From the NCBI GenBank assembly GCA_002269645.1, contig NIVC01002611.1, forward strand, positions 1 to 64,000: a DNA stretch of 64,000 nucleotides, given 5' to 3'. The DNA is from Macrostomum lignano (taxonomy: Eukaryota). Positions 35,341 to 63,700 of the stretch are shown here, piece after piece. The translations under genes were made by a program, and so were the position numbers. The notes under the pieces were generated by a model. The model saw nothing but the letters and a program-made list of their open reading frames with translations, was not told the origin of the DNA and did no database searches. Numbering within the stretch: position 1 is the first letter of the stretch; each line of letters starts with the position of its first letter.

Positions 35341-35799
35341 TGAGGTCTTTATTAAAAAATCACTTACCTGTTTTGGCTCCGGAGAATGCAGACTTTAGCT
35401 GAGCCTGCCAAGAGTAGAGACAAGACTATACCGACTCAGAGATCTGTTTACCACCCTTACCTTAGAATTCAAAACATTGACTTTTTATGCAGAGTAAGAG
35501 CCATCAATAATTAATTGCTAAAGTAAGGCCGCGGGCTCTGCGTGTGTTTAATAATTCAGTCTAATAACCCGCTAGACCAAGATTTCTCAATTGAATTCTT
35601 GAGGGCGATTCTTGGAAATTGACTGCTAGACCAGCCGGTTTTACCGTTCGCAGGGCAAGGGATAATTAAATTGAGTGCAATGCACGTAGGGACAGTGTAT
35701 GCAAGCCTGTACAGGTAGGGACAATAGGCAATCTAAATTCTCACGAGGTGCCGTTAGATGGCGCGGTCATTTAAGGCCGCGATTCTTACATGTGAGCTT

Positions 35800-39720: not shown

Positions 39721-39866
39721 ATCAACACCCAATGCATTAGAAACAAGAAAATGGAATAGATGACGGTTAAAATTGTAACTAGGCGAACTGACTAAGCGAA
39801 AAGGAAAACTAAAACTAAAGAGGCATTTGCCAAAGGCATTAAATTAGAGTACTGAAAAATGATAAT

Positions 39867-42800
39867 TTAATCGCACGGCTTGTACATGACAGTAGTGACG
39901 AACTTCTTCCTATACCGATGAATAGTTGACAGAACCACAACGCCGTCTTTGATGCTCAGCGCGTACAGGTGATTAAGCATCACGTGATCCGGCTCGGGCA
40001 GTAGATTTGGATCGTACCTGGAGTCGGTTGGCCGATTAAGAATCACCTGGAGCAGCTGTTGCGGCAGCACCGGCGGAGCTCGATTTGGGCCTGCCTGCCT
40101 GCCGGTTGGAACCTGGCTGGTGTAGCGGCCTGGCGGACTGCCCGACCGGTTGCGGAGGCGTTCGGACACCTCCGACTGAGTATGCTCCTTGGTTTGCGAG
40201 CTCTCAGCGATGTCCATAGCTAAGGCTTCGAATACTTCAAAGTCGGACGATTTCACTTGGAGAACGTTGTTAGAGGTGCCCATGTTGTTTTGAGCTGTTG
40301 GCTGCAGTTTAGCGATATGCGAAATGTTGTAATTGAAAGCAGCTTTTAATACAGAGGACTTGGCGCCTTCCCCCTGTTAATCTGACGGATTCCCCCTGAG
40401 CCACAGTTAATCTGACCGATTCCCTCTGAGCCACAGTTAATCTGACTGATTCCCCCTGAGCCACAGTTAATCTGACCGATTCCCCCTGAGCCACAGTTAA
40501 TCTGACCGATTCCCCCTGAGCCACAGTTAATCTGACCGATTCCCCCTGAGCCACAGTTAATCTGACCGATTCCCCCTGAGCCACAGTTAATCTGACCGAT
40601 TCCCTCTGAGCCACAGTTAATCTGACTGATTCCCCCTGAGCCACAGTTAATCTGACCGATTCCCCCTGAGCCACAGTTAATCTGACCGATTCCCCCTGAG
40701 CCACTGTTAATCTGACCGATTCCCCCTGAGCCACTGTTAATCTGACCGATTCCCCCTGAGCCACAGTTAATCTGACCGATTCCCTCTGAGCCACTCTAAT
40801 ACCGAACAAACCTAGACTCTCACCTCCTTAGCGTTGACCTGCCACTTGCCGTCTACAATAAACTGATATTGGTGCTCTCCCTCCGGCAGGTCCACAATCG
40901 TATAGAAATGATCCTGGCTAAAAAACGATAAAAAACTTTTCGCTACTATCAGTAGACAACTTAGAAAACTTAAAACTAATAAAAACAAATAAGAGAGCGG
41001 CAAACCTCTTCACTAATGGAATCTTAGTCTGCCAGTTGTTGAAACTGCCGCTAAGGTACACCTCCTTGGCGGTGCCGCCCTCCCATTTGAATACGGTGGG
41101 CAGCTTATTGGCGGTCACGTGATCGCCAGGCCTCTCGGTTATCGTGGAAGCGCGAATTCTGAAGCCCTCGTCCTCGCTAGACTGCTGTTAGTGTTAAAGC
41201 CAAGTACAGACAAGAAATTCAATCGTGAGAATATTTAATAAGCGAGTAAAAAGAAAACTGCTTATAAAAACAATAAATAACCCCGTTCCAAGAACCGTAG
41301 TTCGCACACTTTCTAGTCATGACAGCGCAAATTAATACAAAAAATTCTTAGAACTTTGGCCTATAACACACAGAGGCAATGCATGACTCTGTATGCGTCA
41401 TTATATGTTATGCGAAAAACTTCAGAGAGATTCTTTGCTAGACTCGGGAATCTGGATCCTTTTTGATTTAGTGATGCAGCATAGATTTGGATCATCAATG
41501 CTCAACAGATCGAGCATCATCTAGAGACTCAAGAATCTGGATCATCAATGCTCAACAAATCGAGCATCATCTAGAGACTCGGGAATCTGGATCTTCTCTG
41601 CTCAAGAGATCCAGCATCATCTACAGACTCGGGAATCTGGATCCTTTCTGCTCAAGAGATCCGGCATCACCTACAGACTCGGGAATCTGGATCCTCTCTG
41701 CTCAAGAGATCCAGCATCATCTACAGACTCGGGAATCTGGATCCTTTCTGCTCAAGAGATCCGGCATCACCTACAGACTCGGGAATCTGGATCCTCTCTG
41801 CTCAAGAGATCCAGCATCATCTACAGACTCGGGAATCTGGATCCTTTCTGCTCAAGAGATCCGGCATCACCTACAGACTCGGGAATCTGGATCCTCTCTG
41901 CTCTGCTTAAGAGATCCAGCATCACCTACAGACTCGGGAATCTGGATCCTCTCTGCTCAAGAGATCCAGCATCACCTACAGACTCGGGAATCTGGATCCT
42001 CTCTGCTCTGCTTAAGAGATCCAGCATCACCTACAGACTCGGGAATCTGGATCCTCTCTGCTCAAGAGATCCAGCATCACCTACAGACTCGGGAATCTGG
42101 ATCCTCTCTGCTCAAGAGATCCAGCATCACCTACAGACTCGGGAATATGGATCCTCTCTGCTCTGCTTAAGAGATCCAGCATCACCTACAGACTCGGGGA
42201 TCTGGATCCTCTCTGCTCTGCTTAAGAGATCCAGCATCACCTACAGACTCGGGAATCTGGATCCTCTCTGCTCAAGAGATCCAGCATCACCTACAGACTC
42301 GGGAATCTGGATCCTCTCTGCTCAAGAGATCCAGCATCACCTACAGACTCGGGAATCTGGATCCTCTCTGCTCAAGAGATCCAGCATCACCTACAGACTC
42401 GGGAATCTGGATCCTCTCTGCTCAAGAGATCCAGCATCACCTACAGACTCGGGAATCTGGATCATCAATGCTCAACAGATCGAGCATCATCTAGAGACTC
42501 GGGAATCTGGATCCTCTCTGCTCAAGAGATCCAGCATCACCTACAGACTCGGGAATCTGGATCCTCTCTGCTCAAGAGATCCAGCATCACCTACAGACTC
42601 GGGAATCTGGATCCTCTCTGCTCAAGAGATCCAGCATCACCTACAGACTCGGGAATCTGAATCCTCTCTGCTCTGCTCAAGAGATGCAGCATCACCTACA
42701 GACTCGGGAATCTGGATCTTCTCTTCTCAAGAGATCTTTACAACCATTTGAAGTCTCAGGCCTCATGACTTAAAAAAACAAATAATAAAAAATGCAAATT

Positions 42801-42968: not shown

Positions 42969-44592
42969 GACACGGAATGCTCACTGCAGCTGCGGGTGGC
43001 AATGCAATAGATCCATGCAAATAGCTTTAACTTGGCTTACATCTAACTGCTGTGAGCTATACTATATGTTAGGATGTTTACTTTCTATTGCATTATGATC
43101 CACACAATGTACATCATCCAAGGTGTTATCTATCAAAGGTGTTGGCTTTGAAATAAAAATCTGTGATTAGTGACATATTTTTACTTACTTTCTTCAATTC
43201 AACATATCAATCAATTGACTAATGGTATATAGTTTAGGAAAACAATGCTGTATTTTGACTTTCAGAAATGCCATTGGCCTATTTAAAGCATTAAATAGTG
43301 GCATAGCAATGATTTTGGAGTGGGCAATAAGGAAGCATACAATAAAAGTCTCTAAATTTAAGTAAGGTCATTGTAAAAAAATAAAATTTCTAGATTTTTG
43401 AAAGATATATCCCTAATACATGGCATACATAAATGCCCAACTTCAAAATTTCACCTGACTATGCAACTTAATTTTTGACCAAAAATGTTAATTACTTATA
43501 AAACACCCTATAAAAGTAATGTAATATTGGGTAAACAGCAAGAGTAACTATAACTGTATTATAAAGGCTAAATGCCTTGTCATCTAATTAGTACTATATT
43601 AATTTAATTGGGTTAGCATTTTTGCAATTTACCTTGGCCAGACCCTTTACCAACCAGCCAAATTGACTGGGTTGGCTAGGTGTTGGGCATGTATGATGGC
43701 ATATAGCAAATAATCAAATGATTTTATTCTAGCATATATGCTAATATCATATTGATATTAAACCTTATCAATTTAGACTTGAACTGTTTATACTATGGGA
43801 TAAAAATATAATATTCTAATCATTGCTAGGATTAAAATTATATATAGTAGAAGCATATCTAAATATTGTCTTGCTAATACATGTTATTATTATTCTAAGA
43901 AATATATATTTTTATAAATTTTCATATATCTAGACAAGCACTGTTCTTGTCTAAGTTTATTAATATTTCCTTATATATTCTAAAAACTTCTATGCTCTTT
44001 TTGTATATGTCTATTAAATATGGCAAAATTCTAAAAACTTCTCTAATATATTTAGCCCACACAGGGGCGTAGCCAGGATTTTTTTTGGGGGTATCGGTTA
44101 GCTGTTATCAGTCTACTTTCACTCATTACATGTGCATTTTTCCGGCTTGGCTTAATTCATGAAACGACTTTTAGTGTACATATTTGTATATGCATATATA
44201 CTCGTAATTCATATTCGTAAAGCAAGAAAAAACGAAATTATTTCAACTTCTATCAAATCACCAACACTTTTCCAAGCAAATAACGCAGTGACCAACCTTC
44301 CATATTGATTTTATTTATTCAATATCAAAGAGCAAATTTCACATTTACATCATATGGGACAATACAAGAAGTAGAAATGTAGAATACTAAGTATAGCTCA
44401 CTTATAGCATTTTGATTAATAGAGAATATAATAGTATGCGCAAGCTCTTATTGTATTAGTTTGGTTTTTGTTCCTATATTATTACATTTAATGTACATGT
44501 AATCTTCTACTCGTATTGTGATTAGTTATGTATGTTACGCATGCTCAATCTAGGCCTATCAAAACTTGCTGTCTAAAAGTTTAACTTTGTAC

Positions 44593-47336
44593 TTACAGAT
44601 CAATTCTACGAGACCCATTCTGTACGAACTGATCGATAACTTTATCAATGTCCAGCTTCATGTCCTTGTGGATTAGAAGCTGGGCCAATCCTGTCAGTCG
44701 CTCCTGTCCCATTGTAGAACGTAGGTACGACTTCAGTGGACGAAGCTGACTGAATGATCGCTCAGCAGTTGCAGTGGTGACGGGAATCGTCGCCAGAACT
44801 TGTAGTAGAAGCCGGATGTTAGGAAAGCTCTGGAGGCTAACAGCTGAATTTGCCAACGTCTCGAGCACACTTCGCGGTCTGTCCTTTTGATCGACATTCT
44901 GCCAGCGCTTTTTCCATAGCAAGAATTCAGCCTCGATATCGTCCACAAAGCTTAATCCTCGTAACTGTCCGATGTAAATTTCTATCGATTTCTTCACGCT
45001 GTCAAAACTTTCGTCAACAACACTCTGAGGAAGCAGTCGTGCCATCTGGAATGCAAGCTGCGCATGAGAACTGAAGCGCTCCTCAAGAGTAGCAATTATC
45101 CCATCCAGGAATGGATTGTACATTGCTATGCGGAAGTAATCACGTGCCGTGGAGACATCGGGGTTGGCACGATGCTTCTGTCGACACCTGGCACTGGTTC
45201 GAGGCTTTTGTAGTGGCTCGCCGAGTGCTTTCTCAGCAGAATCGAATATCTTATTGTAACGGACATGGCCATCATCAGAGCGGAGATCTCGAAGAACATC
45301 GATGACAGCCTTAATTTCATTGACACAATCAACAAGATCGAGATCTACACACTGCAATTTCTCTGATAATGGCTTGGTGATGGTGAGAACGGCATCGATG
45401 ATATGGCCTGCAATAACATATTCGCTGTCTAGCAAAAGTTTGAGGTTGTTTCGAGCATTGCTGCCTGCCTCTCCTCCCCATGTGCTGATCTCCTCTAGAG
45501 TTTCAATGATTGCTGGGAAGAGCAGGTTGAATCGGATGAAAGCCTCCTGCTTCTCAACCCATCTGGTCTTGCAGTGCTGTAGAAGTTGATGCACAGATGA
45601 CTCCGGAACCAGCTCTTTGATTTTTTTTTCAAGCAGAGCTGTTCTCTGCGGTGATGAACGAATGAAGACTGTGACTGTATTAACAGCAGTAATAGCGGCA
45701 CGAACTGAATCTAGCTTACAAGCATCCTGCAGGGACAGGTTTAGATTATGCGCAGCACAGTGCACATAGATTGCTAGTTTTTTTCCCAGCTGCTCGCGAA
45801 TCACTGCCTGAACGCCATTGAACTTGCCAGACATGGCTGAAGCTCCATCATAGCCTTGAGCAACAAGTTGTGCTGTAATATGGAGAGAATCGAGCGTCTC
45901 GAGAAGCTTTGTTGCAAGCCCGATACCAGTCAAATCTTCAACGTGAACAAAGCATATGAACTCTTCGTGAATAGCTACACTTCCATCACTGATGTCGAGG
46001 TACCTAACACAGATGGACATCTGTTCTTTGTGCGAAGAATCCGTAGTCTCATCTGCAAGCAGCGCAAAGTAGCCTGCTTTGTTGATTTTTTTTACTAAAT
46101 CTTGGGTGATAACATCAGACAGAGCCTGAATTATTTCATTCTGTGATTCACTGGAAGTGTATTTGGCATTTGATGGTCCAGTGCAAATGTGTTCACGTAG
46201 AATAGGATCATGTTTTGCGAGAAGCTGCAGAAGCGCGACGAAGTTCCCTTTATCATAGTCAATAGTTCCATCTGGATGAACTTTTATAGGTCCAAAGTCA
46301 CGATGTCCTCGAAAAGCCAGACCACAGCGAGCGAGAAATTCAATTGGTTCAATTACGTGTTTTAGTCTTTCCCTATTTTCCTTCACTAGCTTTGCGCGAC
46401 TGACATCCAGCATGTGGCCAACATTCGTTCCAGATAGCAGGGCATCGGCTTTGATCACAGAGTCACTTCTGTGGTAGTCACATTGCAAATGTTTCTTCAG
46501 CTTTGTTGTGATGACATCGAACTTAGTGCATGGAGTTCCCACAAAGGCATCGACTGTTTGTCCATGGATGGCAAAGTTGGTCGGAAGAAATAGAACGCAA
46601 TACCTAAAGGAAAAAGAAATGGTTAGAATGGTAGGAGTGAGCATTAAGTCCATACCACAGATACTAGAACACTAGATACTAGATACTAGAGTTGTTCTAG
46701 TATATGTGGTCCATACATGTACCTCAAGACCAGATCCAGATGTCAAGAGTACAATTTAGCAATACATCAATAAACTCATTAACTTCTAACTTACTTGCAA
46801 AATACGCCGCCGAGCTTAGCAGAATACGCAAAGCATGCGTTGTGACCAGTTAGATGTTGGTGAGACAAGTAGCGCTTGTGGACATTGCCCTTATCAGATT
46901 TAAGCGTGAACGGGAATGAGTACCCTTGTGGGGGCACCCAACAGTCCTTAAGGAATCGCAGTCGAGTAGCTGTATCCAGCTTTCCATCGCGACGAAGCTC
47001 AACAGCATAGCCGATGTCATTGACATTGATCTCAGTCTCAGCAGCTGCTTCATCTGCTTGATGTTGGAGATCAGACTCGTCAAACTGACTTGAAGAAGTA
47101 ATAGTAGCTTGCAGTTGTTGCTCGGGAGCTGTTGGAACTGAATTCGGAGTAGCCAAGTCGGGCAAACTGCCAGTAGCAGTGTCACAAGACACAATAGATG
47201 AATCTGGCTGTGTAGTGCTAGAACTAGGCGTAGACAGTAGCGCAGGATCAGGGTTAGGGCGGGACCGCTTTAAGTTCTCAAATAATGAGCGGATATCATG
47301 ACCATGAGATTTTCGCTTGCTCATTTTGAATTCCAC
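44593..47336 (-). CDS. hAT transposase (TTF-type zinc finger, DUF4371-like region, C-terminal dimerisation domain), about 850 aa, two exons
   Basis: Exon 47336-46795 plus exon 46603-44593 splice in frame (GGVFCK|YCVLF). Motifs LLADETTD, QGYDGASAMSG, HCAAHNLNL, KTRW and TATAERSFSQL; no stops or frameshifts. Confidence 0.93.
46656..46708. mobile_element. 53-bp mini TIR element nested in the transposase intron
   Basis: TIR cacagatactagaaca / tgttctagtatatgtg (15/16); exact 8-bp direct repeat GTCCATAC at 46648-46655 and 46709-46716. Confidence 0.7.
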
Positions 47337-50300
47337 ATGAACTCTTTTGCAGACTTTAGTAGCAGTCCAGAAATAAAAAAAATCTGCCTTAGATTTAGAA
47401 TAAACGGCTTTATGGCCTTAGAATAAACGGCTTGGAGGAGGCGAGGTTATAGTTAATTCTTTCCTTATTCCTTCCCCTTTTTAGTCTTCGCAGGATGGTG
47501 GGGTCATCAGGCAGACGTAGATGCTCATCTTAGTCTTTCTTAATGTACATGCCTATTTAGTTCCTCCTTCTTTCCTTCTAGTTCTAGTTCTCTCCTCTGT
47601 ACATAATATACCCTTCACCCCCTGGCCCCTGAATTTTATTTTCTAGTTAATTCAAGACAGACTTCTTTCAAACAATTCAGAAGCTAATGCATTTTGCAGC
47701 GAAAACTGGCCAGGCAACCCACCCCATCGTTCATCACTGATTCCACTGGCTCAGCTGGCAGACTGCCCACGGGCCACGCCCCAGTCCCACCCCCTCGGCC
47801 CTCGGTTATCCACTCACCCCCCTCACCCCTTAATAGTCGGTTGGTCGGTTGGGAGAATGAGTTGATAGTTGATAGTTGTCCAAGGACCAAGTTATACGAG
47901 TACAAAGAAAGCAATGAAATGACTTGAGATCCACACATCCCCTTAGGCCTTAATGTATTTCTAATGCATACAAGCTATTAATAATACTATTACATATAAT
48001 CACTCTATTCGTTTGTTAATTGTTATTCTATCGATTCGGATACCTTTCTCTTCCTTAACGGTCACTTGCAACTAAAAAAAGTAAATAAAAAATTTTTGCT
48101 TTGGAAATTTGGGGGTATCGGCCGATACACCGATACCCCCCTCGCTACGCCCCTGAGCCCACAAATAAAAACACTCTAACTACCAAAATTACCTAAAGGG
48201 ATTACCCATAGATGCGACCTCCATAGGGGCCTAATCAAGGCTCTTATTGCCATTATGCTACATTTAGAATACTACCATTGCTACTATTAATATAGATTTT
48301 TATTTATTTGTTAACATTTTTATTGGCTAGAATTTAATCAAGATAATAGTTTAATAATCAATTTGTTTTTTAGAAAAATATAGCAAATATATAGTGCAGT
48401 GGTTAGATAAAAATCTATTTTTTAGATTGAGCCAAAGAAATTTCATATTTTTGCTATGGTCTTAAGAATTAGAATTGGATTCTAGGATTGGATTGGGTTC
48501 TATGTTTCTTAACATTAGATTTATAAAATCTTAGTCCTATCAGCATTGTTTACTTTATGCAACTTGTTTATTCCATATCTATTAGTCTATTATCATATTA
48601 TGTCTCTTTTATGTACTATCTATTTTATGCATCTTAAATGCATTACATACATTGCTAAAGCTCAGCTTCTTTACTTTAGCACTTTGACACAAAAATTATA
48701 GAATTCTGGCTTATACGAAATTCTTTATATAAATTGAATATTTAAATTTGACCAGAAATCTTGAAAATAAATAAATAAGTCTCAAACAGTAGTGGATTTA
48801 GGAGGGAGATGCAATGCACAAGGCATTAGGCATGGTGCATGCCCTCTAGTAAATAGTAATGCCTGAGGAGCAGCCATTTTTTGGACAATAAATGTAGTGA
48901 CAAGCGAAGCCATGATGTTTTATTTTTTGCTCTCTGTCCCTTGTACTTAACTTAGTATGCCCCATCCCGTGGTGCTTCAAGCTCATGTATATATGTGAAC
49001 CACGTGATTCAAGTATTTAATCATATAGTAGTCTTGAAATATTTACACCGACCAATCATTTGGAAAAAGAGCCTAGCGAGTGCTAATATATATAAACGCA
49101 CCCGTGTTTGCTTAAAACTAACGAAAACAGCACGATTTAAGTTTTTTGTTTACGGTATGACAGCATGCTGGTTGCTGTCTCAGCTTGCTGGTTAATCGAA
49201 AAATGATTGTTACAATATCAACAAAGCTAGTTAACTTTTTAGCGCCAATAAATGCATTCATGTTTTAGTAGCTTGTTGCAGGACTATCTTTCTGCTGTGG
49301 GTTTCTTGTTAGTTAGTTTTAGACATGCATCATGACGGTAGGCCTAGGCCCTTGCAGCTTAAATTTAAATGCTTTCTACTCGCTGAAGGCAGTGCACGTG
49401 CGTGCGTGCTGCTGGCCGGCAACTAGGAAACTAGGGTCTAAAATCCATGTAGTTCTAAAACTGAGCTGGGGTGAAGGCTGTGTGGCTAAGCCTACACATG
49501 AAATGCCTAAACTAGGCTTACTACTATAAGGCATTGAATTAGACCATTGAATTAGATTTTTTAATAAAATAATTGGTTCTAATTCTAAATTCTAATACTA
49601 TGGTATTAAACGAACTAACAAGTCTGGTTTATTTAGGTCAAGTTAATTGTGTTGTTTAAAAGGTAATCTAGCCACTTGGTATAGGGGGGGGGGCTACTCC
49701 TACTCCTAGGCCTAGGCCAGCCCCAGTGGGCCTAGCCAGGTAGAAGTTGAGTAGTAGGTAGGTGGTAGGCCTAGTAGTTGAGTGAGTTGAGTTGAGTAGA
49801 AAAAAGTAGGGCCTAAGCCTTTGCTTCCCATATAGTCATATGCAAAAAATATCAGTTTTTATTCTAGAGAGTAAGAGAGACTAAGAGTGAGTGCAATTCT
49901 AGGTTTAGACCTAATTAGAAAAAATAACCAGATATTGCTATAAAGTAGGCTATAATGCTAATATTGTATTGGCCATTTAAAAAATATTTGACTTTGAAAA
50001 AGTTCTTGGCTATAAAGTAGTGTATATTTCATTGCTATATTATAATATTAAATAGGCCGGCTTCCAGACAGTCCAGTGACACAGCTGTGTCCTACTCATG
50101 AGGCCATTCTATCCTCGGAAAACACGGCCTTGCAGCCTAGCAATGAATATAGCGGTGTAGCACTGCATGTATTTCTGGCTTTATTTTACGTTGTATTGAA
50201 AACATTTGTGCACATATGCACGAAAAAGTTCTTTCATTGAAACAGTTATACCCTTTTACATTATATATATATATTGGCAATGCCAATGGCTTAATTTAAT

Positions 50301-51329
50301 TTAAGCAGTTCTATACACCTAAAAATATGGGCCCTAAAATTTATGCTTTTTCTTCATCTAGTGTTATGGTATATAAAAGGCGCATATATCCAAGACCTAT
50401 CTATATAATATAATGGTATTTCTATATAAATAGTAATGCTAATTGCTAAATAAAAAATAGAGCTTGACTAGTAAACCATTTGCTAGTATATGACTGGGTT
50501 ATTATTTTTTATTAACAGAGCCAGATTTGTCTATATTGTTGATATATTTCTAGCCAAAGCATTATAGTATTAGTTGCCTATATTAGCTATTAGCTATGCC
50601 TTGTCTAGATATAGTATAGGGCCTAATTCTATCTAGCCTAGGATAGAACTCTATAGCTTTAAGGACTTAATTTTAATGTAGGCCTATTAAGTTTTTAATC
50701 CATTTTACACAAAATTGACTATTTGATTTGATATCAAACCTATTTAATTTAAGCCCTAGGCCTAGCCAAAATAAATCATTGCTAAATAGAATTGAAATTT
50801 AAAATTAAATATACTAGCCTACTAAAATTTATATACACCAAGTTATATATAGTGCTAGGCCTAGGGCTAAAGAAAAGTTGAACCCTAATAATACTATTTA
50901 TTATACTAATGAATTAGTGAGTAAACTTGAAGCCTACCTACTAGGCCTAATATAAATAATTAAGCATACAAGCAAATATTAGAGATTTAGTATATTTGGT
51001 TTGGATTAATATATTCTAATTAGGTCTATATTTGATTCAAAATAGCTAAGCCTACCTAAGCTTTAGCCTAGGCTAAAGATAAAAGCATTAATTTAGCCTT
51101 TTTATTGGATTAAAATATGTTTAGTTAGCATGCTTTGGTGTAACCCTTTTTTCATCTTTCTATATCCTCTTTTCTTATTCTCTATCTTCTATCCTTATAC
51201 TCTTTTCTACCCTTTTTACCCTCCCCTCACCTTTTGATCCTATCCTCTTCAACCTATCTCTACCCTCTTCTACTAGGTTCTACCCTTGTTTATAGCTTTA
51301 CATTTATTTGTGGCTTCATTCTCTTAGCC

Positions 51330-52300
51330 CTAGCTTGAGATCAAGCCCCAGCTCAAGCTCTAGCCACACCACAGCCCTAGCAGCTAGCTCTAGCTTAAGC
51401 TCAAGCACTAGCCCAGCCCCAGCCCTATCCCACTCTATCCCAGCCCCTAATCTAGCCCTAACCTTAGCCCTAGCCCTAGTTCCTCCCCTAGCCCTGGCCT
51501 TAGCCTTAGTGCTTGTTATCCCTGCCCCAGCTCTGGCCCTATCACTATCCTGCCCCAGCCCTAGCCCTTGCCCTAGCCCCAGCCCTAGCCCCAGCCCTAG
51601 AACCAGCCCTAGCCCCAGCCCTAGCCCCAGCCTTTGCCCTTGCCCTAGCCTTAGCCCAAGCCCAAGCCCCAGCCTTAGCCTCAGCCCCAGCCTTTGCCCT
51701 AGCCCAAGCCCAAGCCCAAGCCCTAGCCCTTGCCCTAGCCTTAGCCCAAGCCCCAGCCTTAGCCCCAGCCCCAGCCTTTGCCCTAGCCTTAGCCCAAGCC
51801 CTTGCCCTAGCCTTAGCCCAAGCCCAAGCCCTAGCCCTAGCCTAGCCCTTGCCCCTGCCCTAGCCCCTGCCCTAGCCCCTGCCCTAGCCCTAGCCCCAGC
51901 CCTAGCCTTAGCCTTAGCCCAAGCCCTAGCCCTTGCCCGAGCCCTTGCCCTAGCCTTAGCCTAAGCCCTTGCCCCTGCCCCTGCATCTGCCCTAGCCCCT
52001 GCCCTTGCCCTAGCCCTAGCCCCAGCCCCTGCCCTTGCCCTAGCCCTAGCCCCAGCCCTACCCCACCCAAGCCCTACCCCACCCCAGCGTCAGCCCTACC
52101 CCACCCCATCGCCAGCCCTACCCCACCCTAGCGCCAGCCCTACCCCACTCCAGCCCCAGCCCTACCCCACTCCAGCCCCAGCCCTACCCCACCCCAGCCC
52201 TACCCCATCTCAGCGCCAGCCCTACCCCATCTCAGCGCCAGCCCTACCCCATCCCAGTCTTGGCCCTAGACCCCCAGATCTGGCCCTTTCACTATCCTAG
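51330..52300. repeat. Degenerate hexamer array (CCCTAG/CCCCAG/CCTTAG/CCCAAG), telomere-variant-like
   Basis: Direct reading; mirrored as a G-rich array at about 59780-60750. Confidence 0.9.
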
Positions 52301-53109
52301 CCCTAACCCCAGCAGAATTCTACTTCTTTAACTCCTGCACCCCTGCACTCCCTACACCCCGTGCACTCCACATGTGCTGTTTGTATTTTTATGAATACTT
52401 TTTTTGTTGCTTTAATCATTAATTCCTCCCAGGCAGTCCTTCTAGGCTATCTTTCCTAGGCAGCCCCCAGGCAAACCTTTCAAGGCAGCTTTCCCAGGCA
52501 AACCCTCCCAGACAGCCCCCCTACCCTCCTCTACTTTTCTATCCTCTCCTTACTCTTCTCTACCCTTTATCCTCCTACTCTCCTCTACTATCCTACACAC
52601 CTCTATCCTTCTCTACCCTCTACCCCTTCTCTACCCTCTTCTACCAGCTCCTCCCCTCCTCTGCAGCTATACCCTTGTCTATGGCTTTACCCTCCGTTGC
52701 CAGCCTCACCCCCTACTCTCCTCTACCAGCTCCTACCCTTCTCTGCCCTTCTACCATTTTCTACCCTCCTACCTTCTACTCTCCCCTGCCCTGCTCTACC
52801 CTTCGACACTTTCCCTTCTCTCTTCTACCAGCTCCTACCCTCCTCTACCAACTATTACCCTCCTAGCCTCCGCCATCAGCTCCTACCCTCCTATAACAGG
52901 AGGAATAACAGGATAATGAACCTAGATTAGATTCTATCTACTATACTAGGTTAGTAGCCTATCCTACCTACTAGGCTAGTAAATATAATACCTATCATTC
53001 TACCGTCTAGACTTATAGGTGCTAATCTACTTTATAGTCTGTTAGGCTTCGCGGGTCAACCTGCCAGTCTTCTAGGTACTAATCCACTCTATCTACCTGA
53101 CTAGTAGTT

Positions 53110-53640
53110 GCTAAACAACTCTGTACCCTACAAGGCTAGCACCCTGAGTCAACACGACCTCAGGGTGCTGCAGAGCGACACACTTGCGGCCTACCTTTTC
53201 GTTTTGGTGCTCGATGGGGTGCTACGGAGGGCCCTGCCAACATATGAGGACGGCTTCCTACTGTGGCTGCAAACAAACAGCCGCCATCTGGAGTCGGCGT
53301 AACCCAGGAGCTGTTTGCCTCTACGGCTGAGGGAGCCCAGCGCATGCTAGACAGCCTGGTGGCAGCTGCGGCATCGGTCGGGCTAGCGGTGAACATCGAG
53401 AAGAGGCAGGTGATGTGTACCTGCGGAGCTGCCTATCAAAATCACCTGCTGGGACGCCTGACGATCGTGCATTGGCTCTACCTCGCTGCACGCGCTTCAC
53501 GTACCTCGGCAGTCTTGTGCCCAGTGTCCAGGAGGACTTGGCGCGACGCAGGGGCCTGGCCTGGGTTGCCTTCCGCTCTATCCGAGTTGTCCTGTAGGAC
53601 GCCGCGCTGCCAGACTGCTGCGACGACCTAGCGAGACCCT
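53110..53640 (+). pseudogene. Degenerate non-LTR retrotransposon reverse transcriptase fragment (RTE-like)
   Basis: Frameshifted pieces (G)VLQSDTLAAYLFVLVLDGVLRR, GAQRMLDSLVAAAASVGLAVNIEK and FTYLGS...EDLARRRGLAWVAF match LINE RT motifs (GVLQGDTLAP; FxYLGS). The catalytic YADD segment is missing. Confidence 0.75.
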
Positions 53641-54974
53641 CCGCAGGCAAAGACTTCAACTGGCGGGCCACACCATTCGGCGGAGGCTTACTGTTCTCAA
53701 CCAGTGCAGGACGTCCTGCTACTCACGATGCAGGGCCCCTGGCCCCGAGGCTACGGCCGGGCGAGCCGCTACGCGGATTGCTTGCTAGATGACGCTGGGG
53801 TGATCGGCTAGGAATTCTGTTGCCGCCTTCAGAGAGCTCGCACCGAGAAAACTGATCTGACACCGCCTCCATTGTGAACTGTACTCTGTTGAGTCCCCGG
53901 CGGTTTGCCTTGTTGTTGTCTCTTCAGAATAATTTGCCCAGCTGCGAACTGTGATGGTGCATATCGCGTACTCGCGATTCAAAAGTTTATGCTTCTTACT
54001 GTTTCACTGATCTAATTCCAAACCTACCACGCAAACTATTTACTTTTAATTCCGTGTGCTTTTCTTGTGTTTTACTTTTTACTTTTTACTTTTTACTTTT
54101 TTCTTGTGTCAATGCTATTTATTGCGTGTAATATTGTCGCAAAATTAAACTTCGGATGTCAATATTTAGCTACTGCCGCTGTTCTGCATTACAAATACTT
54201 CCGCATGTACTGACGTAACATTGCGCCAATAATTTTACATTGCGTGGCGTCGAAACCAATCTGCTGTTGAATGCTACTAGCGTAGCTAATGGCCGTTTGA
54301 ATCTCTTGAAATACATTGAAATGTCATGCTGTAGTATTGCTGTTGAAGATCTAAACGAGACTAGCCATACTCCCTACTGATCCATATGCTTCTCAAGCAA
54401 GGTATACGGAAAGCAGAATGAGCAGCAAACTTAGTATTTGATCTTTGGATCCCTTATAGAACCAAGGGAAGGGATCTAGTCTAGATCTAACATTTAAATA
54501 AAAATTCTTGATATAATGGAATGCAATAAATGCCAACCGGAGTAATTTTTTAACTTCCACTTTCCCCGAGTTTGACCACTTTCTCTGCTACAGGCTTAAG
54601 CTAAACCAACGCAAAATGCGAGCCTGAATAAAAAACAACTCACTCCACAACCTTAACCTTAATATTTCTTTCTGCCACTGCTGTGTCTTGCAATACTCAA
54701 AAATCCTGTGACTTCGCTTCACAGATATTGCTTGAGAAACATATGCCGTCCCATTTGAATTGGCGCAAGTCTCTTTTACATCGTCAAAAGCAATATGTCT
54801 GGTGCCAATTATATTTGTGCCGATCAAACTTCCTAGAGAATGATTTGTTGATAACTACATGTCCCTGTCTTGAAGCTTGCACGCTGTCTTTAACCATTAT
54901 TTTGTCGGTGTACAACGTGGAACCGATCAGACAAGTTGGTCGTAAATTCCCTAAAATCCTGGATAGGGGCTGAG

Positions 54975-56815
54975 CTGTTGGGGAAGAGCTAGGCGGCAAG
55001 CAGCGGAGCTGTTGGGGGAGCCGCGGTAGGCAGCGGAGCTGTTGGGGGAGCCGCGGTAGGCAGCGGAGCTGTTGGGGGAGAGGCGGTAGACAGCGGAAAT
55101 GTTGGGGGAGCCGCGGTAGGCAGCGGAGCTGTTGGGGGAGAGGCGGTAGACAGCGGAAATGTTGGGGGAGCCGCGGTAGGCAGCGGAGCTGCTGGGGGAG
55201 AGGCGGCAAGCAGCGGAGCTGTTGGGGGAGCCGCGGTAGGCAGCGGAGCTGTTGGGGGAGCCGCGGTAGGCAGCGGAGCTGTTGGGGGAGAGGCGGCAAG
55301 CAGCGGAGCTGTTGGGGGAGCCGCGGTAGGCAGCGGAGCTGTTGGGGGAGCCGCGGTAGGCAGCGGAGCTGTTGGGGGAGAGGCGGCAAGCAGCGGAGCT
55401 GTTGGGGGAGCCGCGGTAGGCAGCGGAGCTGTTGGGGGAGAGGCGGCAAGCAGCGGAGCTGTTGGGGGAGCCGCGGTAGGCAGCGGAGCTGTTGGGGGAG
55501 AGGCGGCAAGCAGCGGAGCTGTTGGGGGAGCCGCGGTAGGCAGCGGAGCTGTTGGGGGAGCCGCGGTAGACAGCGGAAATGTTGGGGGAGCCGCGGTAGG
55601 CAGCGGAGCTGCTGGGGAGAGGCGGCAAGCAGCGGAGCTGTTGGGGGAGCCGCGGTAGGCAGCGGAGCTGTTGGGGGAGCCGCGGTAGGCAGCGGAGCTG
55701 TTGGGGGAGAGGCGGCAAGCAGCGGAGCTGTTGGGGGAGCCGCGGTAGGCAGCGGAGCTGTTGGGGGAGAGGCGGCAAGCAGCGGAGCTGTTGGGGGAGC
55801 CGCGGTAGGCAGCGGAGCTGTTGGGGGAGAGGCGGCAAGCAGCGGAGCTGTTGGGGGAGCCGCGGTAGGCAGCGGAGCTGTTGGGGGAGAGGCGGTAGAC
55901 AGCGGAAATGTTGGGGGAGCCGCGGTAGGCAGCGGAGCTGTTGGGGGAGCCGCGGTAGGCAGCGGAGCTGTTGGGGGAGAGGCGGCAAGCAGCGGAGCTG
56001 TTGGGGGAGCCGCGGTAGGCAGCGGAGCTGTTGGGGGAGAGGCGGCAAGCAGCGGAGCTGTTGGGGGAGCCGCGGTAGGCAGCGGAGCTGTTGGGGGAGA
56101 GGCGGCAAGCAGCGGAGCTGTTGGGGGAGCCGCGGTAGGCAGCGGAGCTGTTGGGGGAGCCGCGGTAGACAGCGGAAATGTTGGGGGAGCCGCGGTAGGC
56201 AGCGGAGCTGCTGGGGGAGAGGCGGCAAGCAGCGGAGCTGTTGGGGGAGCCGCGGTAGGCAGCGGAGCTGTTGGGGGAGCCGCGGTAGGCAGCGGAGCTG
56301 TTGGGGGAGAGGCGGCAAGCAGCGGAGCTGTTGGGGGAGCCGCGGTAGGCAGCGGAGCTGTTGGGGGAGAGGCGGCAAGCAGCGGAGCTGTTGGGGGAGC
56401 CGCGGTAGGCAGCGGAGCTGTTGGGGGAGAGGCGGCAAGCAGCGGAGCTGTTGGGGGAGCCGCGGTAGGCAGCGGAGCTGTTGGGGGAGCCGCGGTAGGC
56501 AGCGGAGCTTTTGGGGGAGAGGCGGCAAGCAGCGGAGCTGTTGGGGGAGCCGCGGTAGGCAGCGGAGCTGTTGGGGGAGCCGCGGTAGGCAGCGGAGCTG
56601 TTGGGGGAGAGGCGGCAAGCAGCGGAGCTGTTGGGGGAGCCGCGGTAGGCAGCGGAGCTGTTGGGGGAGAGGCGGCAAGCAGCGGAGCTGTTGGGGGAGC
56701 CGCGGTAGGCAGCGGAGCTGTTGGGGGAGCCGCGGTAGGCAGCGGAGCTGTTGGGGGAGAGGCGGCAAGCAGCGGAGCTGTTGGGGGAGAGGCGGCAATT
56801 GCAGTGGAGCTGTTG
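54975..56815. repeat. 30-bp GC-rich minisatellite, about 61 copies, in the element spacer
   Basis: Units gccgcggtaggcagcggagctgttggggga and gaggcggcaagcagcggagctgttggggga; one 1-nt deletion near 55610. Confidence 0.97.
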
Positions 56816-57051
56816 GGTGAAGGAGGAGGTAGCATACATGTAAGTACATGTAGGTTTCTATGCGATCATATTCCACAGAAGTCGCCTTCAAAATTGGATA
56901 CATGTTCGGCGTTCGAAAAATGAATCCCTCTCAGTGTGCATCCCTCCCTGGTGGTACCAAAGAATACCATTTTGTCAATCAAGTTTAGGATTGCCCATTA
57001 ACCTACAGATAGTAGAAAGCGAAGACAATGAGGAAAGTGAAGCCTTTTGAC

Positions 57052-57256
57052 GGGTCGCTTTCATAAGACCGAAATTTTACAACGCCGAAAACTACTGCAC
57101 GATGCTTTCACAAGACCGAAACTTCATAAGACCGACCGAGACACAACGCTGAAAACTGACCAAGGTCTTATGAGGTCTTATGAAGTTTCCGTCTTGTGTA
57201 GGGCCCTGCATTTTGAGTTTTTGGCGTTGTGAAATTTCGGTCTTATGAAATCCCCC
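57052..57256. mobile_element. Palindromic MITE-like element (about 200 bp) in the spacer
   Basis: tttcataagaccgaaattttacaacgccgaaaact (57059-57093) versus the reverse complement of 57216-57250 (33/35), plus an inner inverted pair built on acaagac(c/g)gaaacttcataagacc. No clear TSD. Confidence 0.7.
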
Positions 57257-58440
57257 CTTTTACGAAGCCGATGAGTTCGTGCCGTAGTGTACTAAAATAT
57301 CCGAGTTTAAGTGTATTCTTCTATAATTTAATTCGCTGCCTGTCAGCCACGATGGATCTATACAGGGAGCGGAGATTAATTTACATGTATGTACTCGTAT
57401 AAACATAAAAATTCATATCTTACTTCCTTGGCTCTTTCTTTACCAGTGGAATGGCCGTCTATGGCCAAAAGTCATTAAATTGTTGCCTGAGAATTCAAAA
57501 CGAGACCGATTGTAGAGCCACTGAAGCAATCCACTCGGGGTAGGCTGAATTTGCTGAGCGAGTGGATTGCTTCAGTATTCAATTTTCAACATGGAAGAAG
57601 TGGATATAAACATTGACATGAATGTCAACTTTTGACTGCTGGACAATCTGTAGCAACGACACTTCATCGTGTCGGGACTAGCCATACTCCCTAATAAAGT
57701 ATCAGTAGGGAGTATGGCTAGTCTCGTTTAGATCTTCAACAGCAATACTACAGCATGACATTTCAATGTATTTCAAGAGATTCAAACGGCCATTAGCTAC
57801 GCTAGTAGCATTCAACAGCAGATTGGTTTCGACGCCACGCAATGTAAAATTATTGGCGCAATGTTACGTCAGTACATGCGGAAGTATTTGTAATGCAGAA
57901 CAGCGGCAGTAGCTAAATATTGACATCCGAAGTTTAATTTTGCGACAATATTACACGCAATAAATAGCATTGACACAAGAAAAAAGTAAAAAGTAAAAAG
58001 TAAAAAGTAAAACACAAGAAAAGCACACGGAATTAAAAGTAAATAGTTTGCGTGGTAGGTTTGGAATTAGATCAGTGAAACAGTAAGAAGCATAAACTTT
58101 TGAATCGCGAGTACGCGATATGCACCATCACAGTTCGCAGCTGGGCAAATTATTCTGAAGAGACAACAACAAGGCAAACCGCCGGGGACTCAACAGAGTA
58201 CAGTTCACAATGGAGGCGGTGTCAGATCAGTTTTCTCGGTGCGAGCTCTCTGAAGGCGGCAACAGAATTCCTAGCCGATCACCCCAGCGTCATCTAGCAA
58301 GCAATCCGCGTAGCGGCTCGCCCGGCCGTAGCCTCGGGCCAGGGGCCCTGCATCGTGAGTAGCAGGACGTCCTGCACTGGTTGAGAACAGTAAGCCTCCG
58401 CCGAATGGTGTGGCCCGCCAGTTGAAGTCTTTGCCTGCGG

Positions 58441-58971
58441 AGGGTCTCGCTAGGTCGTCGCAGCAGTCTGGCAGCGCGGCGTCCTACAGGACAACTCGGA
58501 TAGAGCGGAAGGCAACCCAGGCCAGGCCCCTGCGTCGCGCCAAGTCCTCCTGGACACTGGGCACAAGACTGCCGAGGTACGTGAAGCGCGTGCAGCGAGG
58601 TAGAGCCAATGCACGATCGTCAGGCGTCCCAGCAGGTGATTTTGATAGGCAGCTCCGCAGGTACACATCACCTGCCTCTTCTCGATGTTCACCGCTAGCC
58701 CGACCGATGCCGCAGCTGCCACCAGGCTGTCTAGCATGCGCTGGGCTCCCTCAGCCGTAGAGGCAAACAGCTCCTGGGTTACGCCGACTCCAGATGGCGG
58801 CTGTTTGTTTGCAGCCACAGTAGGAAGCCGTCCTCATATGTTGGCAGGGCCCTCCGTAGCACCCCATCGAGCACCAAAACGAAAAGGTAGGCCGCAAGTG
58901 TGTCGCTCTGCAGCACCCTGAGGTCGTGTTGACTCAGGGTGCTAGCCTTGTAGGGTACAGAGTTGTTTAGC
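58441..58971 (-). pseudogene. Mirror copy of the degenerate LINE RT fragment
   Basis: Translations are identical to those of 53110-53640, on the opposite strand. Confidence 0.75.
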
Positions 58972-59779
58972 AACTACTAGTCAGGTAGATAGAGTGGATT
59001 AGTACCTAGAAGACTGGCAGGTTGACCCGCGAAGCCTAACAGACTATAAAGTAGATTAGCACCTATAAGTCTAGACGGTAGAATGATAGGTATTATATTT
59101 ACTAGCCTAGTAGGTAGGATAGGCTACTAACCTAGTATAGTAGATAGAATCTAATCTAGGTTCATTATCCTGTTATTCCTCCTGTTATAGGAGGGTAGGA
59201 GCTGATGGCGGAGGCTAGGAGGGTAATAGTTGGTAGAGGAGGGTAGGAGCTGGTAGAAGAGAGAAGGGAAAGTGTCGAAGGGTAGAGCAGGGCAGGGGAG
59301 AGTAGAAGGTAGGAGGGTAGAAAATGGTAGAAGGGCAGAGAAGGGTAGGAGCTGGTAGAGGAGAGTAGGGGGTGAGGCTGGCAACGGAGGGTAAAGCCAT
59401 AGACAAGGGTATAGCTGCAGAGGAGGGGAGGAGCTGGTAGAAGAGGGTAGAGAAGGGGTAGAGGGTAGAGAAGGATAGAGGTGTGTAGGATAGTAGAGGA
59501 GAGTAGGAGGATAAAGGGTAGAGAAGAGTAAGGAGAGGATAGAAAAGTAGAGGAGGGTAGGGGGGCTGTCTGGGAGGGTTTGCCTGGGAAAGCTGCCTTG
59601 AAAGGTTTGCCTGGGGGCTGCCTAGGAAAGATAGCCTAGAAGGACTGCCTGGGAGGAATTAATGATTAAAGCAACAAAAAAAGTATTCATAAAAATACAA
59701 ACAGCACATGTGGAGTGCACGGGGTGTAGGGAGTGCAGGGGTGCAGGAGTTAAAGAAGTAGAATTCTGCTGGGGTTAGG

Positions 59780-60752
59780 GCTAGGATAGTGAAAGGGCCA
59801 GATCTGGGGGTCTAGGGCCAAGACTGGGATGGGGTAGGGCTGGCGCTGAGATGGGGTAGGGCTGGCGCTGAGATGGGGTAGGGCTGGGGTGGGGTAGGGC
59901 TGGGGCTGGAGTGGGGTAGGGCTGGGGCTGGAGTGGGGTAGGGCTGGCGCTAGGGTGGGGTAGGGCTGGCGATGGGGTGGGGTAGGGCTGACGCTGGGGT
60001 GGGGTAGGGCTTGGGTGGGGTAGGGCTGGGGCTAGGGCTAGGGCAAGGGCAGGGGCTGGGGCTAGGGCTAGGGCAAGGGCAGGGGCTAGGGCAGATGCAG
60101 GGGCAGGGGCAAGGGCTTAGGCTAAGGCTAGGGCAAGGGCTCGGGCAAGGGCTAGGGCTTGGGCTAAGGCTAAGGCTAGGGCTGGGGCTAGGGCTAGGGC
60201 AGGGGCTAGGGCAGGGGCTAGGGCAGGGGCAAGGGCTAGGCTAGGGCTAGGGCTTGGGCTTGGGCTAAGGCTAGGGCAAGGGCTTGGGCTAAGGCTAGGG
60301 CAAAGGCTGGGGCTGGGGCTAAGGCTGGGGCTTGGGCTAAGGCTAGGGCAAGGGCTAGGGCTTGGGCTTGGGCTTGGGCTAGGGCAAAGGCTGGGGCTGG
60401 GGCTAAGGCTGGGGCTTGGGCTTGGGCTAAGGCTAGGGCAAGGGCAAAGGCTGGGGCTAGGGCTGGGGCTAGGGCTGGTTCTAGGGCTGGGGCTAGGGCT
60501 GGGGCTAGGGCAAGGGCTAGGGCTGGGGCAGGATAGTGATAGGGCCAGAGCTGGGGCAGGGATAACAAGCACTAAGGCTAAGGCCAGGGCTAGGGGAGGA
60601 ACTAGGGCTAGGGCTAAGGTTAGGGCTAGATTAGGGGCTGGGATAGAGTGGGATAGGGCTGGGGCTGGGCTAGTGCTTGAGCTTAAGCTAGAGCTAGCTG
60701 CTAGGGCTGTGGTGTGGCTAGAGCTTGAGCTGGGGCTTGATCTCAAGCTAGG
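59780..60752. repeat. G-rich hexamer array (CTAGGG/CTGGGG/CTAAGG/CTTGGG), mirror of 51330-52300
   Basis: Direct reading; occasional true TTAGGG (about 59775 and 60620). Confidence 0.9.
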
Positions 60753-63700
60753 GCTAAGAGAATGAAGCCACAAATAAATGTAAAGCTATAAACAAGGGTA
60801 GAACCTAGTAGAAGAGGGTAGAGATAGGTTGAAGAGGATAGGATCAAAAGGTGAGGGGAGGGTAAAAAGGGTAGAAAAGAGTATAAGGATAGAAGATAGA
60901 GAATAAGAAAAGAGGATATAGAAAGATGAAAAAAGGGTTACACCAAAGCATGCTAACTAAACATATTTTAATCCAATAAAAAGGCTAAATTATTGCTTTT
61001 ATCTTTAGCCTAGGCTAAAGCTTAGGTAGGCTTAGCTATTTTGAATCAAATATAGACCTAATTAGAATATATTAATCCAAACCAAATATACTAAATCTCT
61101 AATATTTGCTTGTATGCTTAATTATTTATATTAGGCCTAGTAGGTAGGCTTCAAGTTTACTCACTAATTCATTAGTATAATAAATAGTATTATTAGGGTT
61201 CAACTTTTCTTTAGCCCTAGGCCTAGCACTATATATAACTTGGTATATATAAATTTTAGTAGGCTAGTATATTTAATTTTAAATTTCAATTCTATTTAGC
61301 AATGATTTATTTTGGCTAGGCCTAGGGCTTAAATTAAATAGGTTTGATATCAAATCAAATAGTCAATTTTGTGTAAAATGGATTAAAAACTTAATAGGCC
61401 TACATTAAAATTAAGTCCTTAAAGCTATAGAGTTCTATCCTAGGCTAGATAGAATTAGGCCCTATACTATATCTAGACAAGGCATAGCTAATAGCTAATA
61501 TAGGCAACTAATACTATAATGCTTTGGCTAGAAATATATCAACAATATAGACAAATCTGGCTCTGTTAATAAAAAATAATAACCCAGTCATATACTAGCA
61601 AATGGTTTACTAGTCAAGCTCTATTTTTTATTTAGCAATTAGCATTACTATTTATATAGAAATACCATTATATTATATAGATAGGTCTTGGATATATGCG
61701 CCTTTTATATACCATAACACTAGATGAAGAAAAAGCATAAATTTTAGGGCCCATATTTTTAGGTGTATAGAACTGCTTAAATTAAATTAAGCCATTGGCA
61801 TTGCCAATATATATATATAATGTAAAAGGGTATAACTGTTTCAATGAAAGAACTTTTTCGTGCATATGTGCACAAATGTTTTCAATACAACGTAAAATAA
61901 AGCCAGAAATACATGCAGTGCTACACCGCTATATTCATTGCTAGGCTGCAAGGCCGTGTTTTCCGAGGATAGAATGGCCTCATGAGTGGGACACAGCTGT
62001 GTCACTGGACTGTCTGGAAGCCGGCCTATTTAATATTATAATATAGCAATGAAATATACACTACTTTATAGCCAAGAACTTTTTCAAAGTCAAATATTTT
62101 TTAAATGGCCAATACAATATTAGCATTATAGCCTACTTTATAGCAATATCTGGTTATTTTTTCTAATTAGGTCTAAACCTAGAATTGCACTCACTCTTAG
62201 TCTCTCTTACTCTCTAGAATAAAAACTGATATTTTTTGCATATGACTATATGGGAAGCAAAGGCTTAGGCCCTACTTTTTTCTACTCAACTCAACTCACT
62301 CAACTACTAGGCCTACCACCTACCTACTACTCAACTTCTACCTGGCTAGGCCCACTGGGGCTGGCCTAGGCCTAGGAGTAGGAGTAGCCCCCCCCCCCTA
62401 TACCAAGTGGCTAGATTACCTTTTAAACAACACAATTAACTTGACCTAAATAAACCAGACTTGTTAGTTCGTTTAATACCATAGTATTAGAATTTAGAAT
62501 TAGAACCAATTATTTTATTAAAAAATCTAATTCAATGGTCTAATTCAATGCCTTATAGTAGTAAGCCTAGTTTAGGCATTTCATGTGTAGGCTTAGCCAC
62601 ACAGCCTTCACCCCAGCTCAGTTTTAGAACTACATGGATTTTAGACCCTAGTTTCCTAGTTGCCGGCCAGCAGCACGCACGCACGTGCACTGCCTTCAGC
62701 GAGTAGAAAGCATTTAAATTTAAGCTGCAAGGGCCTAGGCCTACCGTCATGATGCATGTCTAAAACTAACTAACAAGAAACCCACAGCAGAAAGATAGTC
62801 CTGCAACAAGCTACTAAAACATGAATGCATTTATTGGCGCTAAAAAGTTAACTAGCTTTGTTGATATTGTAACAATCATTTTTCGATTAACCAGCAAGCT
62901 GAGACAGCAACCAGCATGCTGTCATACCGTAAACAAAAAACTTAAATCGTGCTGTTTTCGTTAGTTTTAAGCAAACACGGGTGATAAACGAATAGCTACA
63001 CTTTACATATTAGAGGACAGAAAAGATCAAAGTAAGTTTATCATTGAGTCTTACTATGCAGTCGCAGTAGATTTGCGTAATACACAGTCTATGAAAAAAG
63101 TATTTGTTATATCTTTGTCTACGAGTCCGGTACTATTGAAGTAGCTCATAAGCAATTATTGCCTATGCGTGCCATGGATTTGTTTTGCAGATTTTAAGTT
63201 GTTAAATTTAAATTAAAATTTTCACGCAATGTCGTAGAAGAAAAAATAATTGGTCAATTAGCAAGTAAAAGTACACATATTACTAGCCGTAAAGAAAGCG
63301 CCGCGAGTGCGGTAAAGAAAACTTTTACAAGATAATAACCCTCGGACGCGAGACTTGCTAAGCTTCAAAAAAGGTTATGAAACTTTGAAATAGAAATATA
63401 CAATGCATTATTATTCTCACCAAGGTAGAGATTTGCGCATGCATAAATACTCTAAAGAACTTGTAATATTGGTTTAAGCACTGCATGATGCTCAAGAATG
63501 AAGCCTTAGAGGCTATCTCGACTGGCCGTAGCCCGAGGGAATTATTGTGATTAGATTTAATCATGCATATGTTGCCATCGCGCAGCAGAGATTTCTTTTC
63601 GCTATCTTGAGTTTTTTTCAGCTAGGACTGTTCAATTAATGCTGATTTCTGGCGATGCATTGTACATGTACGAGTAGTATAGAAATATGAATTCGAGTAT

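Follow-up and report, generated by a model that had tools for sequence, protein, structure and literature searches.

A 13.9-kb foldback-like unit with 5.3-kb inverted arms and an exact 7-bp target-site duplication in the flatworm Macrostomum lignano

Foldback elements (Drosophila FB, Tetris and the sea-urchin TU) consist largely of long terminal inverted repeats, each with a unique outer part, a domain of tandem repeats and an inner domain, around a variable, non-coding middle; they are flanked by a target-site duplication, mostly lack a transposase, and their structure is viewed as evolving when the transposase is lost and the repeats lengthen (PMC4079207). The repeats of Tetris, which is attributed to Mutator, reach 1.7 kilobases (kb) in length and its duplications measure 8–10 base pairs (bp) (PMC4079207). 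Galileo, a Drosophila element of the P superfamily, makes 7-bp duplications and has terminal repeats of 18–1250 bp that grow by recruiting duplicated, inverted internal sequence; the longest occur in non-autonomous copies with two terminal inverted repeats, and terminal-repeat length is no reliable classifier according to the authors of that study (PMC3573991). Nothing relevant on foldback or P-type elements in Macrostomum or in flatworms was found in the literature. Here we describe a 13.9-kb unit of Macrostomum lignano, on contig NIVC01002611.1 (156,915 bp; assembly Mlig_3_7, GCA_002269645.1), whose structure fits the foldback class. It lies in a stretch of 64,000 nucleotides (positions 1 to 64,000 of the contig, forward strand) that was analysed as a whole and that we refer to as the window. 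On balance, we consider that the unit probably arose when a non-autonomous, foldback-like element was inserted, once and recently, by a transposase-type mechanism into an AT-rich intergenic site, and that its inverted repeats were lengthened by inverted copying.

The insertion is supported by two hallmarks, sharp identical termini and an exact 7-bp duplication. Excluding the duplications the unit is 13,885 bp in length (13,899 bp with both), and its termini read CACCCGTG…CACGGGTG. The arm sequence opens with CACCCGTGTTTGC at 49099 and its reverse complement closes at 62983; further outward the inverted repeat fails at once, as 49098 is G and 62984 is A. Directly beyond these ends stands ATAAACG, exact at both outer edges (49092-49098 and 62984-62990), and the flanks outside it are otherwise unrelated to each other and unique. 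A previous inspection of the letters without database searches (hereafter, the sequence-only reading) had put the chance of such a duplication at 1 in 16,000 under uniform base composition. At the local composition, a 7-bp direct match at a fixed position has a chance of about 1 in 8000, which is less extreme and still clearly non-random. Neither the termini nor the duplication is predicted by an inverted duplication in place, and it is on these two features that the case for a transposon is built.

The two arms are nearly identical. An inverted-repeat search returned three adjoining blocks that jointly cover 49099-54381 and 57701-62983, and alignment of arm against arm by BLASTN gave a single alignment of 5284 columns with 99.886% identity, 4 mismatches and 2 gaps. 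With MAFFT, the substitutions fall at 50093 (T/C), 50836 (C/T), 51088 (T/A) and 51681 (T/C), a substitution divergence of 0.076%; of the one-base indels, one is within the poly-G run 49684-49693 and the other at 53743. The first two of these substitutions had been cited in the sequence-only reading, correctly, and its arms, coordinates, 3319-bp spacer, termini and ATAAACG are all present as it gave them. The features of the unit are as follows.

49092-49098, no strand: left target-site duplication, ATAAACG, 7 bp; read directly, identical to 62984-62990
49099-54381, + strand: left arm, 5283 bp, beginning CACCCGTGTTTGCTTAAAAC; 99.886% identity to the reverse complement of 57701-62983
49099-49693, + strand: outermost arm domain, unique, with poly-G at its end and a few short subterminal repeats, for example CAGCWTGCTGGTT twice
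49694-51140, + strand: AT-rich arm domain with many TAGGCCTA motifs; by reading of the sequence, resembles host intergenic DNA
51140-52900, + strand: tandem-repeat arm domain of CT-rich degenerate repeats and a hexamer array (TRF)
53114-53799, + strand: decayed reverse-transcriptase remnant; mirror copy at about 58272-58967 (- strand) in the right arm
54359-54376, + strand: 18-mer GACTAGCCATACTCCCTA, copy 1 of 3, at the inner end of the left arm; exact match
54382-57700, no strand: spacer (middle domain), 3319 bp, with no recognisable coding capacity
54993-56817, no strand: 30-bp minisatellite in the spacer, 60.8 copies (TRF; 88% matches, score 2841)
57059-57250, no strand: palindromic sequence of about 190 bp in the spacer, resembling a miniature inverted-repeat transposable element (MITE); self-inverted BLAST match
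57676-57723, no strand: junction hairpin of direct 18-mer, 12-nt loop and inverted 18-mer (DNA fold)
57701-62983, - strand: right arm, 5283 bp, inverted copy of the left, ending ...GTTTTAAGCAAACACGGGTG (alignments)
62984-62990, no strand: right target-site duplication, ATAAACG, 7 bp; read directly

From the outside in, each arm runs through about 0.6 kb of unique sequence, about 1.4 kb of AT-rich sequence, about 1.8 kb of CT-rich and hexamer repeats and an inner 1.5 kb with the reverse-transcriptase (RT) remnant. No second copy of the outermost domain (49099-49693) occurs in the window besides that of the mirror arm, and the spacer is unique within the window except for one 18-bp repeat. This is the architecture of a foldback element, as had been proposed from the letters: the long inverted arms make up the bulk of the unit (76%; 2 × 5283 of 13,885 bp), they are internally repetitive (the arrays at 51140-52900), the middle is non-coding and without a Pfam domain, and ATAAACG flanks the unit on both sides.

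If the unit was inserted in this way, a transposase supplied from elsewhere would have cut the target with a 7-bp stagger and joined both termini to it, and repair of the gaps after joining would have left ATAAACG on each side. The empty site before insertion would then have read ...AATATATATAAACGAATAGC..., with one ATAAACG.

The same logic of termini and duplication holds for a neighbouring element in the window, which serves as an internal control. A hAT element at 44062-48155 has CAGGGGCG termini (CAGGGGCGTAGC...), short terminal repeats and an exact 8-bp duplication, AGCCCACA. It carries the gene BOX15_Mlig007787g1 (44593-47324), which has two exons, is apparently intact and encodes a transposase-like protein of 846 amino acids with DUF4371 and a hAT dimerisation domain; the 686-amino-acid open reading frame at 44593-46653 (- strand) is 100% identical to this M. 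lignano NCBI protein. The element recurs at unrelated positions on at least three other contigs, with 98.7-99.7% identity over 934 bp, which indicates that the hAT family is young; together with the exact duplication, it also indicates that, in this genome, recent insertions of DNA transposons keep their duplications. The hAT copies diverge by 0.3-1.3% among themselves, compared with 0.076% between the arms of the unit. The hAT element, a young DNA transposon, shares with the unit its location within these 64 kb, its sharp ends and the exactness of its duplication; it differs in its 8-bp duplication, short terminal repeats, transposase-like gene and several copies, and has no sequence in common with the unit. 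On contig NIVC01002497.1, another hAT copy is separated by about 4 kb from a 903-amino-acid PIWI/Argonaute gene (L003 3087-5965; ArgoL1, PAZ and Piwi domains).

We compared the ends of the unit with those expected of the described superfamilies. A 7-bp duplication is compatible with P-type transposases, which produce 7-8 bp (Repbase superfamilies). A hAT origin would require 8 bp, and the 8-bp reading of the duplication fails (TATAAACG versus ATAAACGA). Transib elements have CAC termini and a 5-bp duplication; the CAC start is present here, but the duplication is 7 bp and CACCCGTG is not a CACNGTG heptamer, so a Transib or RAG-like assignment was rejected. CACTA/EnSpm elements end in CACTA and duplicate 3 bp, whereas the terminus of the unit is CACCC and its 3-bp flanks differ (ACG versus ATA). 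Maverick/Polinton elements combine a 6-bp duplication with polymerase B, integrase and capsid genes; a Maverick/Polinton or virus-like origin was set aside because no such domains or genes were found and the duplication is 7 bp, not 6. Had one element inserted twice, independently and in opposite orientations, the inner ends should show a terminus and a duplication, and they have neither; a LINE-type (long interspersed nuclear element) insertion of the whole unit was rejected as there is no tail and both ends are identical. Mutator and FB elements make duplications of 8-10 bp (PMC4079207), usually 9; the unit matches over 7 bp only.

Among the described elements, Galileo is close to the unit in its 7-bp duplication and in its long, internally repetitive repeats grown from inverted internal sequence (PMC3573991). 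The sequence-only reading had assigned the unit to Galileo-type elements of the P superfamily. Its 7-bp duplication does fall in their 7-8-bp range and is the one point that speaks for the assignment, whereas the CAC terminus that had been attributed to Galileo was not confirmed in the paper that we examined. We place the unit in no superfamily. Galileo also differs from the unit: its repeats measure 18-1250 bp, its membership is set by a THAP/P-type transposase, which the unit does not encode, and its host is a fly rather than a flatworm. Tetris, with repeats of 1.7 kb and a duplication of 8-10 bp, is unlike the unit, in which these measure 5.3 kb and 7 bp. The arms are around four times as long as the longest verified repeats of Galileo (1.25 kb) or Tetris (1.7 kb). 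Furthermore, unlike the arms of foldback families, those of the unit hold a retroelement fragment and host-like DNA instead of family-specific repeats, and one copy is known.

The sequence-only reading had described the unit as carrying cargo, and most of this cargo proved to be real. The RT remnant is collinear with residues ~1054-1310 of the M. lignano RT protein P0126 (UniProt A0A1I8I8J6) at 52-76% identity. It is one broken gene, truncated at its 5′ end; its reading frame changes four times, which gives five segments, and it is further interrupted by a single internal gap and by several stops. Against Pfam it gives only a weak RVT_1 match (E=0.28), and UniProt labels P0124, a protein model that overlaps the remnant, as an RT-domain protein. 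The remnant is an old fragment of a resident retroelement and is older than the duplication of the arms. The 30-bp repeat of the minisatellite was recovered by TRF. The MITE-like sequence is also present in the spacer, as a near-perfect palindrome (the DNA fold of 57051-57260 is -59.6 kcal/mol) for which no target-site duplication was clearly seen at 57059-57250. The term ‘telomere-like’ for the hexamer arrays was, by comparison, an overstatement. The array at 51373-52257 is of the CCCTAG/CCCCAG type (31 CCCTAG, 2 CCCTAA and 0 CCCTAA dimers) and thus lacks canonical telomere dimers; its unit is one base off the TTAGGG-type repeat, and it is not a telomere array.

Coding potential in the unit is close to nil. 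A Pfam scan of all stop-free stretches of at least 50 amino acids in the arms and spacer identified no domain except the weak RVT_1 match, and hence no encoded transposase, which agrees with the non-autonomous status that had been proposed. Rfam and tRNA scans of 48-64 kb were empty.

Much of the arm sequence resembles its surroundings. The palindromic motif TAGGCCTA (AGGCCT/CCTAGG) recurs in AT-rich DNA of the window, at 1-4000, at 49300-51100 and, mirrored, at 60900-62800; as these motifs are common at 1-4000, the AT-rich domain of the arms resembles host intergenic DNA. With this AT-rich DNA, degenerate tandem arrays and a decayed RT fragment, the arms look like captured host-type DNA and not like family-specific sequence. 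For the same reasons, the 5.3-kb arms are unlikely to be working terminal repeats and are probably host-type DNA that was copied secondarily.

How the arms may have grown is suggested by their inner boundaries. The 18-mer GACTAGCCATACTCCCTA has exactly three copies in the window, compared with 0.08 expected even when 3 mismatches are allowed, and all three sit at inner arm boundaries: 54359-54376 at the inner end of the left arm, 57676-57693 (direct) at the end of the spacer and 57706-57723 (inverted) at the start of the right arm. The spacer copy and the right-arm copy fold into a hairpin (12-nt loop, 21-bp stem; -21.7 kcal/mol, DNA parameters), and the arm boundary 57700/57701 falls inside its loop. 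At the other junction, 54381/54382, there is no homology. A hairpin that belongs to the right arm and spacer, with the boundary in its loop, fits an origin in which the right arm and spacer are the older, contiguous sequence and the left arm was copied.

We propose that a break occurred near the old left end of an element that had short terminal repeats. Repair would have copied the opposite arm inward, beginning from the short original terminal repeat, until it halted at the junction hairpin, and the copied end would then have been joined to the spacer at 54381/54382 without homology. Because such repair starts from the terminal repeat, both the outer termini and the duplication would be kept. 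The elongation could have taken place after insertion at this site or earlier, in a donor copy. Its outcome would be the same as that of terminal-repeat elongation in Galileo and other foldback elements.

Other copies of the unit were sought in several sequence sets. Within the window, neither the terminal 20-mer nor a BLAST self-comparison placed the terminus anywhere else, and in 65 kb of other M. lignano loci (L002-L004) the 20-mer was absent even with 3 mismatches. It was also absent from bacterial, viral and metagenome contig collections, which do not include the M. lignano genome and are therefore uninformative on this point. Translated open reading frames of the terminal region had no match in a protein database that is equally uninformative, as it holds no gene calls of this type for M. 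lignano. The contigs that carry the hAT relatives were considered as homeologous empty sites and rejected; they represent three independent hAT insertions with unrelated flanks. No other annotated gene stands within 10 kb of the unit to point to a homeologous locus.

The assembly itself has to be taken into account. Mlig_3_7 was produced from PacBio continuous long reads (CLR) with Canu 1.4 and Pilon polishing; more than 50% of the genome is repeats (tandem repeats 13%, DNA transposons 3.05%, LINEs 1.66%), and 180-312 Mb of the assembly are redundant as a result of a recent genome duplication (PMC5730564). A further view of the locus comes from P0124 (UniProt A0A1I8GDW3), a model of the older ML2 annotation that maps exactly, in pieces and on one strand, to 53281-53799, to the minisatellite up to 56818 and to 58365-58777. 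P0124 runs from one arm through the spacer into the inverted arm, so a second assembler (ML2) gave the same arrangement, although from the same reads. The model then passes once more through the inner arm segment, which implies a third copy in the ML2 contig; this extra segment would be due either to mis-assembly or to another haplotype that is arranged differently. A homology search with P0124 returned only itself, its low-complexity minisatellite part having probably saturated the candidates. The transcript-based annotation of NCBI has no gene between 47.3 and 57.3 kb.

Several observations weigh against a single insertion of an element with copied arms. One copy is known, so mobility depends on a single duplication; a second instance of the termini is absent from the window and from the 65 kb of other M. 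lignano sequence, and the unit has no identified cognate transposase. Apart from the terminus, the arms bear no mark of transposon DNA. The direction of copying and the stall at the hairpin are read from one junction, and the presence of the 18-mer at the left arm's inner end would also be compatible with different histories, such as an insertion in the middle of a near-perfect palindrome. The arms’ resemblance to ordinary intergenic DNA would also suit a one-off inverted duplication made in place, through fold-back repair or template switching during replication, with the 7-bp match a coincidence. The inner boundary lies at a hairpin, a typical site of template switching or stalling, no other copy is known, and the M. 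lignano genome is prone to rearrangement and was recently duplicated (PMC5730564). Large palindromes made by fold-back repair share with the unit their kilobase-sized, near-identical arms, a unique spacer and a junction at a short hairpin. However, no flanking direct duplication is expected of them, and here both arms stop at the same base beside ATAAACG; with a chance of about 1/8000 for the match and flanks that are otherwise unrelated and unique, we regard such an origin as distinctly unlikely. An error of assembly, through a fold-back chimeric PacBio read or a Canu mis-join in a repeat-rich, neopolyploid genome, is suggested by the CLR/Canu 1.4 data, the repeat content and the redundancy described above (PMC5730564), by the two arm differences out of six that are homopolymer indels typical of such data, and by the third pass of P0124 through the arm segment, a possible sign of error in one or both assemblies. 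Yet chimeras from missed adapters are palindromes without a spacer at contig ends, whereas the arms of the unit are separated by 3.3 kb of unique sequence and the unit is bordered on either side by unique flanks, within a contig of 157 kb. An exact duplication is not expected from assembly error, and the ML2 assembler, albeit with the same reads, likewise placed the minisatellite spacer between an arm and its inverted copy. We therefore consider an artefact very improbable.

The sequence-only reading had gone further than a single insertion, to a multi-copy, possibly undescribed giant-repeat family of Galileo type within the P superfamily, in which the whole 13.9-kb unit is mobilised with its cargo by a THAP/P-type transposase acting in trans. 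The 7-bp duplication is within the Galileo/P range (PMC3573991), the architecture with internally repetitive arms is that of a foldback element, near-identical arms and an intact duplication suggest a recent event, and DNA transposons are young in this genome, given hAT copies that are 98.7-99.7% identical. No second copy, transposase or similarity to P-type termini could be shown, however, and the CAC terminus of Galileo was not found in the paper examined. The arms are around fourfold longer than the longest verified Galileo or Tetris repeats and are made of host-like DNA, and their length is in any case an unreliable guide to classification in the view of the Galileo authors (PMC3573991). 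Such a family is, in our judgement, unlikely. Irrespective of how it arose, the locus might now act as a hairpin-RNA gene: read-through of arm, spacer and inverted arm would yield long double-stranded RNA (dsRNA) that feeds small-RNA silencing, for example of the retroelement family represented in the arm. On a single strand, the predicted model P0124 reaches from the left arm across the spacer into the right arm, and the arms are 99.9% complementary over 5.3 kb and include a fragment of a resident RT-bearing element. P0124, however, was probably predicted ab initio and pieced together across a decayed RT fragment, with frame changes and skipped stretches, and the transcript-based annotation of NCBI is without a gene at 47.3-57.3 kb; a hairpin-RNA gene seems highly improbable. 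A single, recent insertion with inverted copying of the arms remains the reading that we favour.

The remainder of the window is also rich in repeats. A 14.6-kb satellite at 13514-28141 consists of about 1007 copies of a 14-bp unit, CCTGACTCAAGCCC (also with a 42-bp period), and has a very strong GC skew, about -0.38. It is followed at 28729-42736 by at least nine different minisatellite arrays of 0.3-1.6 kb each, with units of 14, 28, 48, 22, 35, 22/87, 31, 30 and 50 bp, closely packed into an unusually dense patchwork of unrelated tandem repeats. At 5929-7740 (+ strand), a 603-amino-acid open reading frame has an N-terminal half that is rich in Gln and Ala and a C-terminal part that, by reading of the sequence, appears to be of the CPEB RNA-binding type; it is presumably an exon of a host gene.

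If it stems from one event only, the unit is a commonplace side product of transposon activity and repair. It is doubtful, although conceivable, that M. lignano harbours a currently or recently mobile foldback family with inverted repeats of more than 5 kb, a captured load of host and retroelement DNA that could exceed 10 kb, and a transposase that cuts with a 7-bp stagger, P-like or of an undescribed type, with none described in flatworms. Such a family, if real, would widen the range of lengths known for the terminal inverted repeats of cut-and-paste elements and would offer a clean example of repeat growth in which copying stopped at a hairpin. It would also add a type of DNA transposon to a flatworm model with a repeat-hampered assembly, in which studies of mobile elements are confined to long terminal repeat (LTR) elements and a few DNA transposons. 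Long near-perfect inverted repeats are hotspots of rearrangement and possible sources of dsRNA, two properties that bear on the karyotype instability of M. lignano and on its PIWI biology.

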